Shown here: positions 45,601-48,600 of the stretch, in pieces
Layout: each line of letters starts with the position of its first letter
Numbering within the stretch: position 1 is the stretch's first letter
DNA from: Isurus oxyrinchus
Lineage: Eukaryota
Direction: 5' to 3'
NCBI GenBank assembly: GCA_026770705.1
Contig: JANJGN010001651.1
Location: 62,001-120,035, forward strand
Length of the DNA stretch: 58,035 bases
Made by a program: the position numbers and the translations under genes
The notes under the pieces: generated by a model
Seen by the model: the letters and a program-made list of their open reading frames with translations, nothing else
Told to the model about the DNA's origin: nothing
Databases searched by the model: none

Positions 45601-48600
45601 CAGGTACAGCACGGTGTTAGATACAGAGTAAAGCTCCCTCTGCACTCTCCCCATCAAACACTCCCAGGACAGGTACAGCACGGTGTTAGATACAGAGTAA
45701 AGCTCCCTCTACACTGTCCCCATCAAACACTCCCAGGACAGGTACAGCATGGGGTTAGATACAGAGTAAATCTCCCTCTACACCGTCCCCATCAAACACT
45801 CCCAGGACAGGTACAGCACGGGGTTAGATACAGAGTAAATCTCCCTCTACACTGTCCCCATCAAACACTCCCAGAACAGGTACAGCACGGGGTTAGATAC
45901 AGAGTATATCTCCCTCTACACCGTCCCCATCAAACACTCCCAGGACAGGTACAGCACGGGGTTAGATACAGAGTAAAGATCCCTCTACACCGTCCCCATC
46001 AAACACTCCCAGGACAGGTACAGCACAGGGTTAGATACAGAGTAAATCTCCCTCTACACTGTCCCCATCAAACACTCCCAGGACAGGTACAGCACAGGGT
46101 CAGATACAGAGTAAATCTCCCTCTGCACTGTCCCCATCAAACACTCCCAGGACAGGTACAGCACGGGGTTAGATACAGAGTAAAGCTCCCTCTACACCGT
46201 CCCCATCAAACACTCCCAGGACAGGTACAGCACGGGGTTAGATACAGAGTAAATCTCCCTCTACACCGTCCCCATCAAACACTCCCAGGACAGGCACAGC
46301 ACGGGGTTAGATACAGAGTAAAGCTCCCTCTACACCGTCCCCATCAAACACTCCCAGGACAGGTACAGCACGGGGTTAGATACTGAGTAAAGCTCCCTCT
46401 ACACTGTCCCCATCAAACACTCCCAGGACAGATACAGCACGGGGTTAGATACAGAGTAAATCTCCCTCTACACCGTCCCCATCAAACACTCCCAGGACAG
46501 GTACAGCACGGGGTGAGATACAGAGTAAATCTCCCTCTACACCGTCCCCATCAAACACTCCCAGGACAGGTACAGCACGGGGTTAGATACAGAGTAAATC
46601 TCCCTCTGCACTGTCCCCATCAAACACTCCCAGGACAGGTACAGCACGGGGTCACCAACCTGGGAACAGAACGCAGCCAATCAGGTCCAGATTATTATAC
46701 AAAAAGCTACCACCAGGAGCTATCACCACTGCACAGCCAGTGTGTAATACTATAAACCCCCCTCCAGGGTGCAGCATTTCACTGGGAGCCGGGTGTAATA
46801 CTGTAAATCACCTCTAGGTGGTAACTTTACAACGGGCGCCTGTTGTAATACTGTAACTCCCCCTCCAGGGTGCAGCTTTGCACTGGGAGCCGGCTGTAAT
46901 ACTGTGGATCAGCCTCCAGGGGGCAGCTTTACTGCGGGTGTTGTGTGTAGTACCGTCACCCACCCTCCAGGGGGCCGCTTGACACCTGGCCGTGTGTAAT
47001 ACTGCAAGTCTGCCTCTAGGGGGCAGCTTCACTGAGGGCGTTGCGTGTAATACCATAACCCAGCCTCCAGGGGGCAGCGTTACCCCTGGCCCTGTGTAAT
47101 ACTGTAAGTCTCCCTCTAGGGGGCAGCTTTGCGGCGGGTGTTGTGTGTCATACCATAACCCAGCCTCCAGGAGGCAGCGTAACACCTGGCCCCGTGTGAT
47201 ACTGTCAGTCTCCCTCTAGGGGGCAATGTTACACAGGGTCCTGGGTGTCGTACCCCAACCCGCCCTCCAGGGGGGGTATCTTTACTCTGGGTGCCAGAGG
47301 TAATGCTCCCACCCACCCTCCAGGGGGCAGCTTTACAGTGGGTGTGTACGTGTCAGGCGTAATACTGCGCCTCACCCTCCAGGGGGCGGCTTGATGCTAA
47401 GTGCCGGGTGTAATACTCCAAGTCTCCACCAGCTGTGGAGTGAGCGCTGTCGAGTGGCTTATCCAGTCACTGGACAGAGCGGGAGGGACCAGTGGTACCT
47501 GGCAAAGCAGAGGGTGGGCGCGGGGTGAGGTGAGGGGGTTCGCCTTGCAACAGGATAGTCCCCAACGCTGGGTTCCAGACAAGATAGGAGCTGCAGAGGG
47601 GTCCGACACATCTCAGCCAGAGGGTCAGCGCTGAGGGAGTGCCGCACTGTCGGAGGGTCAGTACTGAGGGAGTGCCGCACTGTCGGAGGGTCAGTGCTGA
47701 GGGAGAGCCGCACTGTCGGAGGGTCAGTGCTGAGGGAGATCCGCACTGTCAGAGGGTCAGTACTGAGGGAGAGCCGCACTGTCGGAGGGTCAGTACTGAG
47801 GGAGTGCCGCACTGTCGGAGGGTCAGTGATGAGGGAGAGCCGCACTGTCAGAGGGTCAGTACTGAGGGAAAGCCGCACTGGCGGAGGGTCAGTACTGAGG
47901 GAAAGCCGCACTGGCGGAGGGTCAGTACTGAGGGAGAGCCGCACTGTCGGAGGGTCAGTACTGAGGGGAGAGCCGCACTGTCGGAGGGTCAGTACTGAGG
48001 GAGAGCCGCACTGTCGGAGGGTCAGTACTGAGTGAGCGCCGCACTGTCAGAGGGTCAGTGCTGAGGGAGAGCCGCACTGTCGGAGGGTCAGTACTGAGGG
48101 AGTGCCGCACTGTCGGAGGGTCAGTACTGAGGGAGTGCCGCACTGTCGGAGGGTCAGTACTGAGGGAGTGCTGCACTGTCGGAGGGTCAGTACTGAGGGA
48201 GAGCCGCACTGTCGGAGGGTCAGTACTGAGGGAGAGCCGCACTGTCGGAGGGTCAGTACTGAGGGAGTGCCGCACTGTCGGAGGGTCAGTACTGAGGGAG
48301 TGCCGCACTGTCGGAGGGTCAGTACTGAGGGAGAGCCGCACTGTCGGAGGGTCAGTACTGAGGGAGAGCCGCACTGTCGGAGGGTCAGTACTGAGGGAGA
48401 GCCGCACTGTCGGAGGGTCAGTGCTGAGGGAGCGCCGCACTGTCGGAGGGTCAGTACTGAGGGAGTGCCGCACTGTCGGAGGGTCAGTGCTGAGGGAGTG
48501 CCGCACTGTCAGAGGGTCAGCACTGAGGGAGAGTCCGCACTGTCGGAGGGTCAGTGCTGAGGGAGAGCCGCACTGTCGGATGGTCAGTGCTGAGGGAGTG

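Follow-up and report, generated by a model that had tools for sequence, protein, structure and literature searches.

A minisatellite of co-oriented CTCF-type sites in the first intron of the shark AID gene, a candidate boundary element

Tandem CTCF-like sites in AID intron 1

A tandem array of about 690 bases inside intron 1 of the Isurus oxyrinchus AID gene carries, in each of its 13 units, a core resembling the binding site of CTCF. With a probability that we put at about 0.45, the array is an old minisatellite of CTCF-type sites, confined to a single locus, which would serve as a directional barrier or anchor if these sites are occupied. As a plausible CTCF-site minisatellite it is a credible candidate for a boundary element, and other tandem repeats already provide examples of this kind. 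The gene and its repeats are arranged as follows in the window, that is, the whole stretch of 58,035 nucleotides analyzed here.

44410..44828, minus strand: AID exon following exon 1, corresponding to fused mammalian exons 2 and 3; 139 full codons
44829..49422, minus strand: AID intron 1, 4.6 kb, with the 69-bp satellite, the array, the 33-bp satellite and, at its end, G/C-rich unique sequence
44853..46652, plus strand: 69-bp satellite adjoining the array
46740..47425, plus strand: CTCF-like minisatellite array of 13 units of 49-59 bp, the centre consisting of 100-bp A/B dimers
47620..48829, plus strand: 33-bp satellite on the promoter side of the array
49423..49430, minus strand: coding part of AID exon 1, ATGGACAG, followed by a gtaag donor

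Joining exon 1 to the next exon yields MDS-CLM, which is also found in AID proteins of other sharks, and the latter exon has 99.3% identity to the partial AID of Carcharodon carcharias. Since both exons are encoded on the minus strand and lie on either side of the array, the array falls within intron 1, at a distance of 2.0 kb from exon 1; an earlier reading of the same DNA, made from the sequence only, had placed it there, about 2 kb from the promoter, and the exon mapping agrees. Over 29 nt, the 33-bp satellite shows approximately 79% complementarity with a portion of the 69-bp satellite. Two runs of N are present in the window, at 52600-52983 and 53032-53483.

Each unit of the array consists of an upstream block, GTGTAATAC, followed by a variable 10-nt spacer and the core, CCTCYAGGGGGCAGC. 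Tandem Repeats Finder reports a period of 100 with 5.3 copies and 80% matches at 46740-47274, and a second period of 51 with 66% matches, whereas the satellites beside the array are 92-94% homogeneous. These figures bear out the description in the sequence-only reading of a diverged repeat of about 50 bp, partly a 100-bp dimer, with more homogeneous minisatellites next to it. We also reproduced the positions given there: the 13 core starts run from 46761 to 47376 with a spacing of 49-59 bp, and the offset between block and core is 17-18 nt in all units that keep the upstream block. The sequence TGTAATAC begins at 46743, 46794, 46844, 46895, 46995, 47046, 47095, and 47409, and is found nowhere else on either strand of the whole 58 kb. 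A-type and B-type units are distinguished by a C/T difference at the Y position of the core, where CTCF accepts either base.

Comparison of the array with tRNA heads and Rfam families gave no match; no transposon termini were found, and the array itself lacks terminal inverted repeats. An assembly artefact was ruled out, because a single 1020-nt contig from an independent read set covers the whole stretch 46653-47619 and the array is also present in a second species.

Matches to the CTCF core and their orientation

The 13 units were scored with counts taken to be those of the JASPAR matrix MA0139.1 (column sums 908-913). Eight of them match at p<1e-5, three more at p<1e-4, and the remaining two at p 2-6e-4. 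The individual sites are listed below.

46707..46725, plus strand: degenerate edge copy, CCACCAGGAG; p 2.6e-4
46758..46877, plus strand: promoter-distal edge units, moderate at 46758 and 46808 (p about 5e-5), weak at 46859
46910..47228, plus strand: central block of the array, with six strong sites and a moderate one at 46961 (score 9.0)
46910, 47010, 47061, 47110, 47161, 47210, plus strand: starts of the six strong CTCF-like 19-mers (scores 13.5-19.1, p 2e-7 to 8e-6)
47261..47279, plus strand: decayed unit with a G7 run after the core; p 5.6e-4
47314..47391, plus strand: two further strong 19-mers in longer units of 53-59 bp, with starts at 47314 (score 13.8) and 47373 (score 14.2)

The sequence-only reading had counted about 13 full-length CTCF sites. 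The 13 co-oriented cores are indeed present, but "full-length" overstates them, strong cores making up only eight of the 13. The matrix scan that it had proposed, performed here with these counts, supports 11 of the 13 units at p<1e-4, leaving two weak ones and the strict consensus unmatched. No unit matches the strict IUPAC core CCASYAGRKGGCRS, because core position 3 is T in all 13 units (A in about 80% of known sites). Damaging changes are seen in five of the 13 cores; the units at 46758..46877 show T instead of G at matrix column 13, or else a T at column 15. As to the two degenerate edge copies that had been suspected, the one at 46707 is a weak match, whereas the one near 47426 misses p<1e-3.

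Elsewhere in the 58-kb window only one match at p<1e-4 is found, at 44708, within the exon. Dinucleotide shuffles of the array give 0.08 matches at p<1e-5 and 0.59 at p<1e-4, compared with the observed 8 and 11. At TAD boundaries of the skate, in which the CTCF orientation code is present, a score threshold of 8 was applied with the same matrix (PMC10115646), and all 11 shark units at p<1e-4 score above it.

All 13 cores are on the plus strand, and thus face the promoter of the minus-strand AID gene, as the sequence-only reading had it. Taking the orientation logic, including the ZF3/N-terminal side, as in PMC12885311, the orientation of the cores predicts that the ZF3/N-terminal side of bound CTCF would be directed toward the promoter. 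No convergent partner motif was detected in the 8.6 kb upstream of the promoter within the window, nor elsewhere in the window.

The upstream block

The upstream block was proposed in the sequence-only reading to be the module read by zinc fingers 9-11, a suggestion that holds for its position and less so for its sequence. The block lies at the distance bridged by ZF8 (linker of 2-7 bp before TGG-CCA), and its offset of 17-18 nt fits the published typical offset of 17, the linker being variable. Comparison of GTGTAATACT with the literature upstream consensus CTGCAGTTCC gives identity at 5 of 10 positions, about the level of chance when several linkers are allowed; when the linker is set to 6 bp, the two bases contacted specifically in the crystal structure (PMC10484683), T and C, do match. 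The likeness of the block to the CTCF module rests on its position and on the CTCF site of the chicken beta-globin insulator 5'HS4 (FII), the gel-shift probe sequences of which were taken from PMC5337984 and PMC12885311. In both the array and HS4, an offset of exactly 18 nt separates the start of TGTAAT from the core, the core of HS4 differs at one of 15 bases (CCGCTAGGGGGCAGC versus CCTCTAGGGGGCAGC), and neither has A at core position 3. HS4 has one site only, and the hypersensitive region around it is CpG-rich and marks a domain border, whereas the array consists of 13 tandem, intronic, CpG-poor putative sites.

Variability among units, copies elsewhere, and alternative explanations

Parsimony reconstruction among the units gave 0.86 steps per column in the core, 1.1 in the upstream block, and 2.7 elsewhere, so that the two blocks change about three-fold less than the rest of the unit (binomial P 4.5e-6). 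The motif-specific conservation that had been suggested for this array is supported among units: of 49 possible rotations, the CTCF geometry ranks first for low variation, the conservation of the blocks persists when CpG columns are left out (P 2e-5), and over the 19 matrix columns variability is inversely correlated with CTCF information content (rho -0.66, p 0.002). Substitutions present in the core are also milder than random ones (p 0.03-0.04).

The sequence-only reading had named dispersal of the unit throughout the genome as grounds for abandoning the idea. In the source sample, at a likeness of at least 80% and with 76% of the run read, one contig fits and none is placed twice; the unit is hence not a dispersed repeat, and transposon-borne sites, for which the unit would be expected at many loci, were rejected. 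These are Logan contigs, so that their depth is uninformative on copy number. A related species has the same array on single tiling contigs, with unique unit-by-unit placement and 91-94% identity, and there the core at 46808 reads as the array consensus. Coverage in that species leaves out the flanks 46653-46745 and 47348-47619, where a gap proves nothing. Differences between the species affect 7 of 104 positions in the blocks and 20 of 181 in the rest (p 0.30), which is no significant sparing in an underpowered comparison; the same limitation applies to the core alone (2 of 48, p 0.18).

It is quite possible that the array is a neutral minisatellite, older than its neighbours, which resembles CTCF sites by chance and is unbound or irrelevant, the uneven variability having arisen from the history of the array, namely amplification of A/B dimers, decay of the edges, decay of CpG, and exchange with the flanking satellite. 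The AID gene is packed with satellites, at least eight families of them, those around the array may be heterochromatic, and the array was chosen after the fact; of shuffled 100-bp dimers, 1.2% reach p<1e-5 and 0.26% reach p<1e-6, so that some such arrays are to be expected in a repeat-rich genome. A segment of 25-27 nt in the 69-bp satellite aligns with the upstream block, the spacer, and the first seven core bases of A-type units, with 21 of 25 aligned bases in common (z 4.5-5.2), and the "motif" may therefore have inherited some of its bases from the repeat. The decay of the edge units and the lack of significant sparing of the blocks between species are in line with neutrality, and the interspecies divergence of 6-9% may equal the neutral level in slowly evolving sharks. 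The CpG observed-to-expected ratio of the array, 0.38, points the same way; this depletion equals that of the neighbouring 69-bp satellite, is not what would be expected of DNA that steady occupancy in the germline keeps free of methylation, and counts weakly against such occupancy. What array history does not predict is that variability follows the CTCF information content column by column. The fit of the low-variation columns to CTCF geometry, with or without CpG columns, likewise argues against neutrality, as does the persistence of the pattern when common changes are counted once on the tree. The AT-rich upstream block is conserved too, and GC-biased conversion therefore does not explain the pattern.

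It is unlikely that the blocks serve a role other than CTCF binding, as a site for a G-run zinc-finger factor, a recombination-promoting minisatellite core, or an RNA element, either in the AID pre-mRNA or in an antisense transcript. The core contains CAGGGGGC, which we take to occur in the INSM1-type motif, and GGGCAG, presumably shared with the classical Jeffreys-type minisatellite core; A-type units hold GTAAGT, a hexamer similar to a 5' splice site, on the plus strand; and the upstream block is conserved in spite of its poor match to the CTCF consensus. These alternatives account for only part of the conserved block, whereas CTCF fits the whole 14-15 nt along its length and the tolerated variation is CTCF-like; the lack of tRNA and Rfam matches is a further point against them. 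Adjacent CTCF motifs less than 100 bp apart, termed 2xCTS, permit side-by-side occupancy (PMC5973138), and CTCFL is present in sharks (PMC7471279). Still less credible is that the array, as a 2xCTS-type cluster, is used mainly by germline CTCFL/BORIS, or that it is an alternative intronic promoter or enhancer and not an insulator: CpG depletion does not suit a germline-active, promoter-like element, and no RNA run contained the stretch, the 24 runs listed comprising neither RNA nor ChIP. The 2xCTS clusters comprise two motifs, usually at promoters or enhancers, whereas the array has up to 13 in phase. Readings by eye as EBF-type sites or E-boxes were rejected (CACCTG occurs in two units only, CCCNNGGG in none), and so was a G-quadruplex or R-loop, there being one G-run per 50 bp, on the template strand.

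Comparison with known CTCF clusters

A cluster of mostly co-oriented CTCF sites forms the super-anchor at the 3' end of Igh. The Igh 3' CTCF-binding elements, approximately ten in number, border an immune locus and are a strong loop-extrusion barrier; they extend over several kb of unique sequence with no tandem repeat, and what they flank is the substrate locus and not the gene for AID. Repeats of the DXZ4, ICCE, and FIRRE type resemble the array in having a co-oriented CTCF motif in each tandem unit; in them a short motif is conserved while the remainder diverges (PMC6125249, PMC3491370), and the orientation of CTCF motifs in tandem repeats matters for long-range contacts (bioRxiv 10.1101/165340). 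In the shark array, the co-oriented motif is found in 13 of 13 units (11 pass p<1e-4), and among units it is conserved while the rest diverges. The DXZ4-type repeats have kb-sized units on the mammalian X with demonstrated allele-specific CTCF binding, whereas the shark array, a minisatellite of predicted sites with 50-bp units, is 0.7 kb long and lies within a gene intron of autosomal type.

Repeat-borne CTCF sites have been described in SINE B2 elements of rodents and in hAT/LTR elements of lamprey, where CTCF binds the same two-part motif as in mammals and where the repeat sites, like the array, lack CpG (PMC5504073). Those copies were dispersed by transposition, whereas the copies of the array are in tandem, at one locus in the source-sample contigs. 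The position of the array, the first intron of the AID gene, is also that of region 2 of mammalian Aicda, which contains elements restraining or licensing transcription (PMC3628980). Region 2 consists of silencers and B-cell activator sites, and CTCF is nowhere mentioned in that paper.

Proposed mechanism and implications

According to the proposed model, zinc fingers 3-7 would read the core and fingers 9-11 would sit on the conserved upstream block in eight strong and three moderate sites, 50 bp apart and in the same direction. If CTCF occupies these sites, its N-terminal side, which stalls cohesin, would be turned toward exon 1 and the upstream region, and the array, lying 2 kb into the gene, would act as a directional barrier or anchor. 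Cohesin coming from the promoter side would then be held at the array, and in this way, we propose, the domain of the promoter and upstream enhancers would be separated from the gene body with its many satellites. CTCF occupancy and barrier activity are what we infer from the motifs; an effect of the array on AID expression is speculative.

AID mutates DNA, and its expression must therefore be tightly confined. We consider it doubtful that the array has been under selection, and conserved in the lineage, as a CTCF super-anchor that closes off the promoter together with the upstream enhancers. Were that so, cartilaginous fish would use architectural insulation for the task that intronic silencers perform in mammals, and tandem amplification would be seen to create CTCF boundaries in addition to transposition. 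If the sites turn out to be unbound, the array would be a warning that repeat-rich shark genomes yield good CTCF motif arrays, which are over-called by motif scans. If bound, it would provide a compact case, in an early-branching vertebrate, of tandem duplication giving rise to a CTCF barrier near the promoter of an immune mutator gene, and more evidence for a working CTCF orientation code in cartilaginous fish.

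AID gene and its satellite setting

Nearly the whole window consists of satellite DNA, in which Tandem Repeats Finder detected at least eight tandem families, and the AID (AICDA) gene is carried on small unique islands of the minus strand amid these satellites. The relevant features are as follows.

near 35.45-35.57 kb, minus strand: APOBEC-type C-terminal exon (Pfam)
44410-44828, minus strand: 419-nt AID exon with the deaminase core; the intron found between exons 2 and 3 in mammals is absent
44829-49422, minus strand: AID intron 1, from exon 1 and the splice at 44828
46740-47425, plus strand: CTCF-like array inside intron 1, 2.0 kb from exon 1, flanked by a 69-bp satellite (gene-body side) and a 33-bp satellite (promoter side)
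49430-49423, minus strand: coding part of AID exon 1, ATGGACAG followed by gtaag

The translated 44410-44828 exon is 99.3% identical to a partial AID of Carcharodon carcharias; identity is 96% with Cetorhinus and 88% with Scyliorhinus, which places the source genome in a lamniform shark or something very near to one. Exon 1 spliced to 44828 yields MDS-CLM..., the same N-terminus that other shark AIDs have, which defines intron 1 as 44829-49422. The placement of the array in AICDA intron 1, about 2 kb from the promoter, was thus correct in the sequence-only reading.

The other repeats show diverse composition. A 32-bp C-rich satellite directly downstream of the catalytic exon (43154-44371, GC 0.80, CpG o/e 1.22) forms a CpG-island-like tandem repeat within the gene body, whereas the 69-bp satellite is CpG-poor (o/e 0.30). 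A 3.7-kb imperfect 12/15/27-bp repeat (39473-43133, GGAGGTGGTGAGGGA-like) occupies the intron preceding the last large exon; its G-rich plus strand is the AID template strand, and it is similar to the classical minisatellite core. Past the 3' end of AID, 33 kb of 70-bp satellite (1-33180) has a CpG o/e of 1.07, that is, no depletion, despite a GC content of 0.44. A (GA)n/(GAGA) tract (49440-49500, minus strand) directly upstream of the start codon falls in the presumed 5'UTR or core promoter.

Co-oriented CTCF-like units

Anchored on the core, the array comprises 13 units at 49-59 bp spacing, each consisting of GTGTAATAC, a variable 10-nt spacer, CCTC[C/T]AGGGGGCAGC and a variable tail; the positions previously assigned to both blocks were correct. 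Tandem Repeats Finder reported periods of 100 (80% matches) and 51 (66% matches), versus 92-94% matches in the neighbouring arrays, in agreement with the proposed partial 100-bp dimer and more homogeneous neighbours.

The window was scored with a hand-entered version of the JASPAR MA0139.1 count matrix, whose column sums (908-913) appear correct. Eight of the 13 units had p<1e-5 (scores 13.5-19.1), three more had p<1e-4 and two were weak, every match being on the plus strand. Hence, of the about 13 full-length CTCF sites originally claimed, the co-orientation stands and the number is overstated, with eight strong cores. All 11 units at p<1e-4 score above 8, the value applied with MA0139.1 to skate TAD boundaries (PMC10115646). 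The hand-entered matrix recognizes 11 of 13 units, whereas none of the 13 conforms to the strict IUPAC consensus CCASYAGRKGGCRS, since core position 3 is T throughout. Outside the array, the only match at p<1e-4 in 58 kb (44708-44726, plus strand), in the catalytic exon and antisense to AID, is probably a coding-sequence coincidence.

The upstream block had been assigned to zinc fingers 9-11. The published upstream consensus is CTGCAGTTCC-like, with a linker before TGG-CCA of usually 5 bp (range 2-7) (PMC12885311); with a 6-bp linker, 5 of 10 positions of the shark block agree with this consensus, which is no better than chance given the allowed spacings. With the same linker, however, the block has both the T and the C that form the specific contacts in the ZF3-11 crystal structure (PMC10484683). 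In the classical chicken HS4 CTCF gel-shift probe, the core and that of the shark A-type units, one of the two unit types, are alike in all but 1 base of 15, and TGTAAT begins exactly 18 nt ahead of it (PMC5337984; a near-identical probe in PMC12885311). Vertebrate CTCF thus binds sequences of this type in vitro. For the shark array, the "full-length site" is a resemblance, based on the position of the block and on the HS4 probe.

Conservation of the motif and the neutral alternative

Parsimony steps per column were counted on a neighbour-joining tree of the 13 aligned units, so that changes inherited in common, as through the A/B dimer, were counted once. The core has 0.86 and the upstream block 1.1 steps per column versus 2.7 in the other 26 columns (binomial P 4.5e-6), although alignment of the variable tail somewhat inflates the tail count; among 49 unit rotations, the two-block CTCF geometry has the lowest count. 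The proposed motif-specific conservation is thus recovered, with the caveats of short units, a rough tree and the hand-entered matrix. It is not explained by CpG decay, since without any column having CpG in any unit the blocks still show 0.4 versus 2.3 steps per column (P 2e-5). Across the 19 matrix columns, variability falls with CTCF information content (Spearman -0.66, p 0.002), the matrix-score cost of about 12 independent core substitutions is below that of random ones (p 0.03-0.04), and the most frequent unit difference is C/T at a position where CTCF takes either. This pattern is the strongest argument that the array sequence may have been kept as a CTCF-type site.

An unbound, neutral minisatellite is a somewhat improbable alternative. 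The thirteen matches reflect amplification of one ancestral match. Shuffling the array yields 0.08 matches at p<1e-5; when a 100-bp dimer is shuffled instead, 1.2% of trials contain a match at p<1e-5 and 0.26% one at p<1e-6. The chance of some such CTCF-like minisatellite in a repeat-rich genome is not negligible. The array CpG o/e of 0.38 is near that of the 69-bp satellite and differs from those of the promoter (0.68) and the GC-rich 32-bp satellite (1.22), which suggests long-term germline methylation and counts against constant occupancy; predicted CTCF binding itself would not be methylation-sensitive, as the cores contain no CpG. A-type units also align with the 69-bp satellite from the upstream block through the spacer to the seventh core base (21/25 bases plus a 2-nt gap; 14/15 ungapped; 46446-46652 versus 47092-47118, also units at 46808 and 47210), scoring 13-14 versus a shuffle mean of 7 and maximum of 12 (300 trials; p about 0.003-0.02), which may indicate common origin, local conversion or chance. 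No such alignment was found for B-type units. The 33-bp satellite matches the reverse complement of part of the 69-bp unit (about 79% over 29 nt, 46589-46617 versus 47721-47749), placing the array between inverted, related satellite arms, and together these similarities imply that part of the "site" may share descent with the intron-filling repeat family. Such an origin lowers the prior for a dedicated element; it is compatible with function, since repeats have carried CTCF sites to new places in lamprey and rodents (PMC5504073). Against neutrality, the low-variability columns follow CTCF geometry, also without CpG columns, and variability follows information content.

Single locus and a second species

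We looked up 46653-47619 in public runs, placing contigs at 80% likeness. In the source sample a single 1020-nt contig spans the entire stretch and no second contig fitted in the 76% of the run that was read. This gives no indication of further copies in the source genome, and within this scope the genome-wide dispersal that would have spoken against the proposed array is not seen. In a second, related species (five further studies), short contigs cover 46746-46997 and 47068-47347 with 91-97% identity and 41 differences in 533 nt over the four main pieces; the flanks lie outside this coverage, and such holes prove nothing. Every contig was placed at one site only, and this unit-by-unit placement indicates that the array and its unit-specific differences are older than the species split, without later homogenisation. 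After 47347 the second species has a (GT)n run versus GTGTGTACGTGTCAGG here (47340-47360), a microsatellite growth or shrinkage within the second-to-last unit.

The 27 placed substitutions fall 7/104 in the blocks and 20/181 elsewhere (p 0.30), and the core alone has 2/48 (p 0.18); the direction is that expected under constraint, in a test without power. Individual sites turn over, as the decayed 46808 core is consensus in the second species and the strong 47161 core has a damaging change there.

Possible barrier function

On the core as written, CTCF runs from ZF7 to ZF3 in the 5' to 3' direction, with the cohesin-stalling N-terminus on the 3' side (orientation logic, PMC12885311). All sites face the promoter, as had been proposed, and the N-terminal side of bound CTCF would face higher coordinates, towards exon 1 at 49.4 kb and what lies upstream of it. 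With CTCF in place, at least eight sites in 0.5 kb would form a strong one-sided barrier to cohesin arriving from the promoter side. Enhancer blocking is reported to be best with the enhancer on the ZF3 side (PMC12885311), which would make this the best-blocking orientation for enhancers located there. Neighbouring sites 50 bp apart could plausibly be bound at once, because 2xCTS elements show joint occupancy of motifs separated by less than 100 bp (PMC5973138). Skate has a CTCF orientation code (PMC10115646), and the two-part motif dates back to lamprey (PMC5504073). Since the sequenced bases of the 8.6 kb upstream, which include two N gaps, contain no reverse-oriented partner motif, no concrete loop can be proposed.

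Clustered CTCF barriers at immune loci are known. Repeat-driven multiplication of CTCF sites is known as well (PMC5504073), and the tandem-repeat units of DXZ4, ICCE and FIRRE carry co-oriented, selectively conserved CTCF motifs (PMC6125249, PMC3491370). In mammals, intron 1 of Aicda is an established regulatory region whose description does not involve CTCF (PMC3628980). From the sequence evidence we estimate a probability of roughly 0.55 that the array binds CTCF in some tissue; that it binds and also acts as a directional barrier is close to an even chance, on the lower side, and that it both plays a part in regulating AID and is conserved outside lamnids is distinctly unlikely. The shark array would thus be a new candidate among CTCF-motif tandem repeats, at an interesting location.
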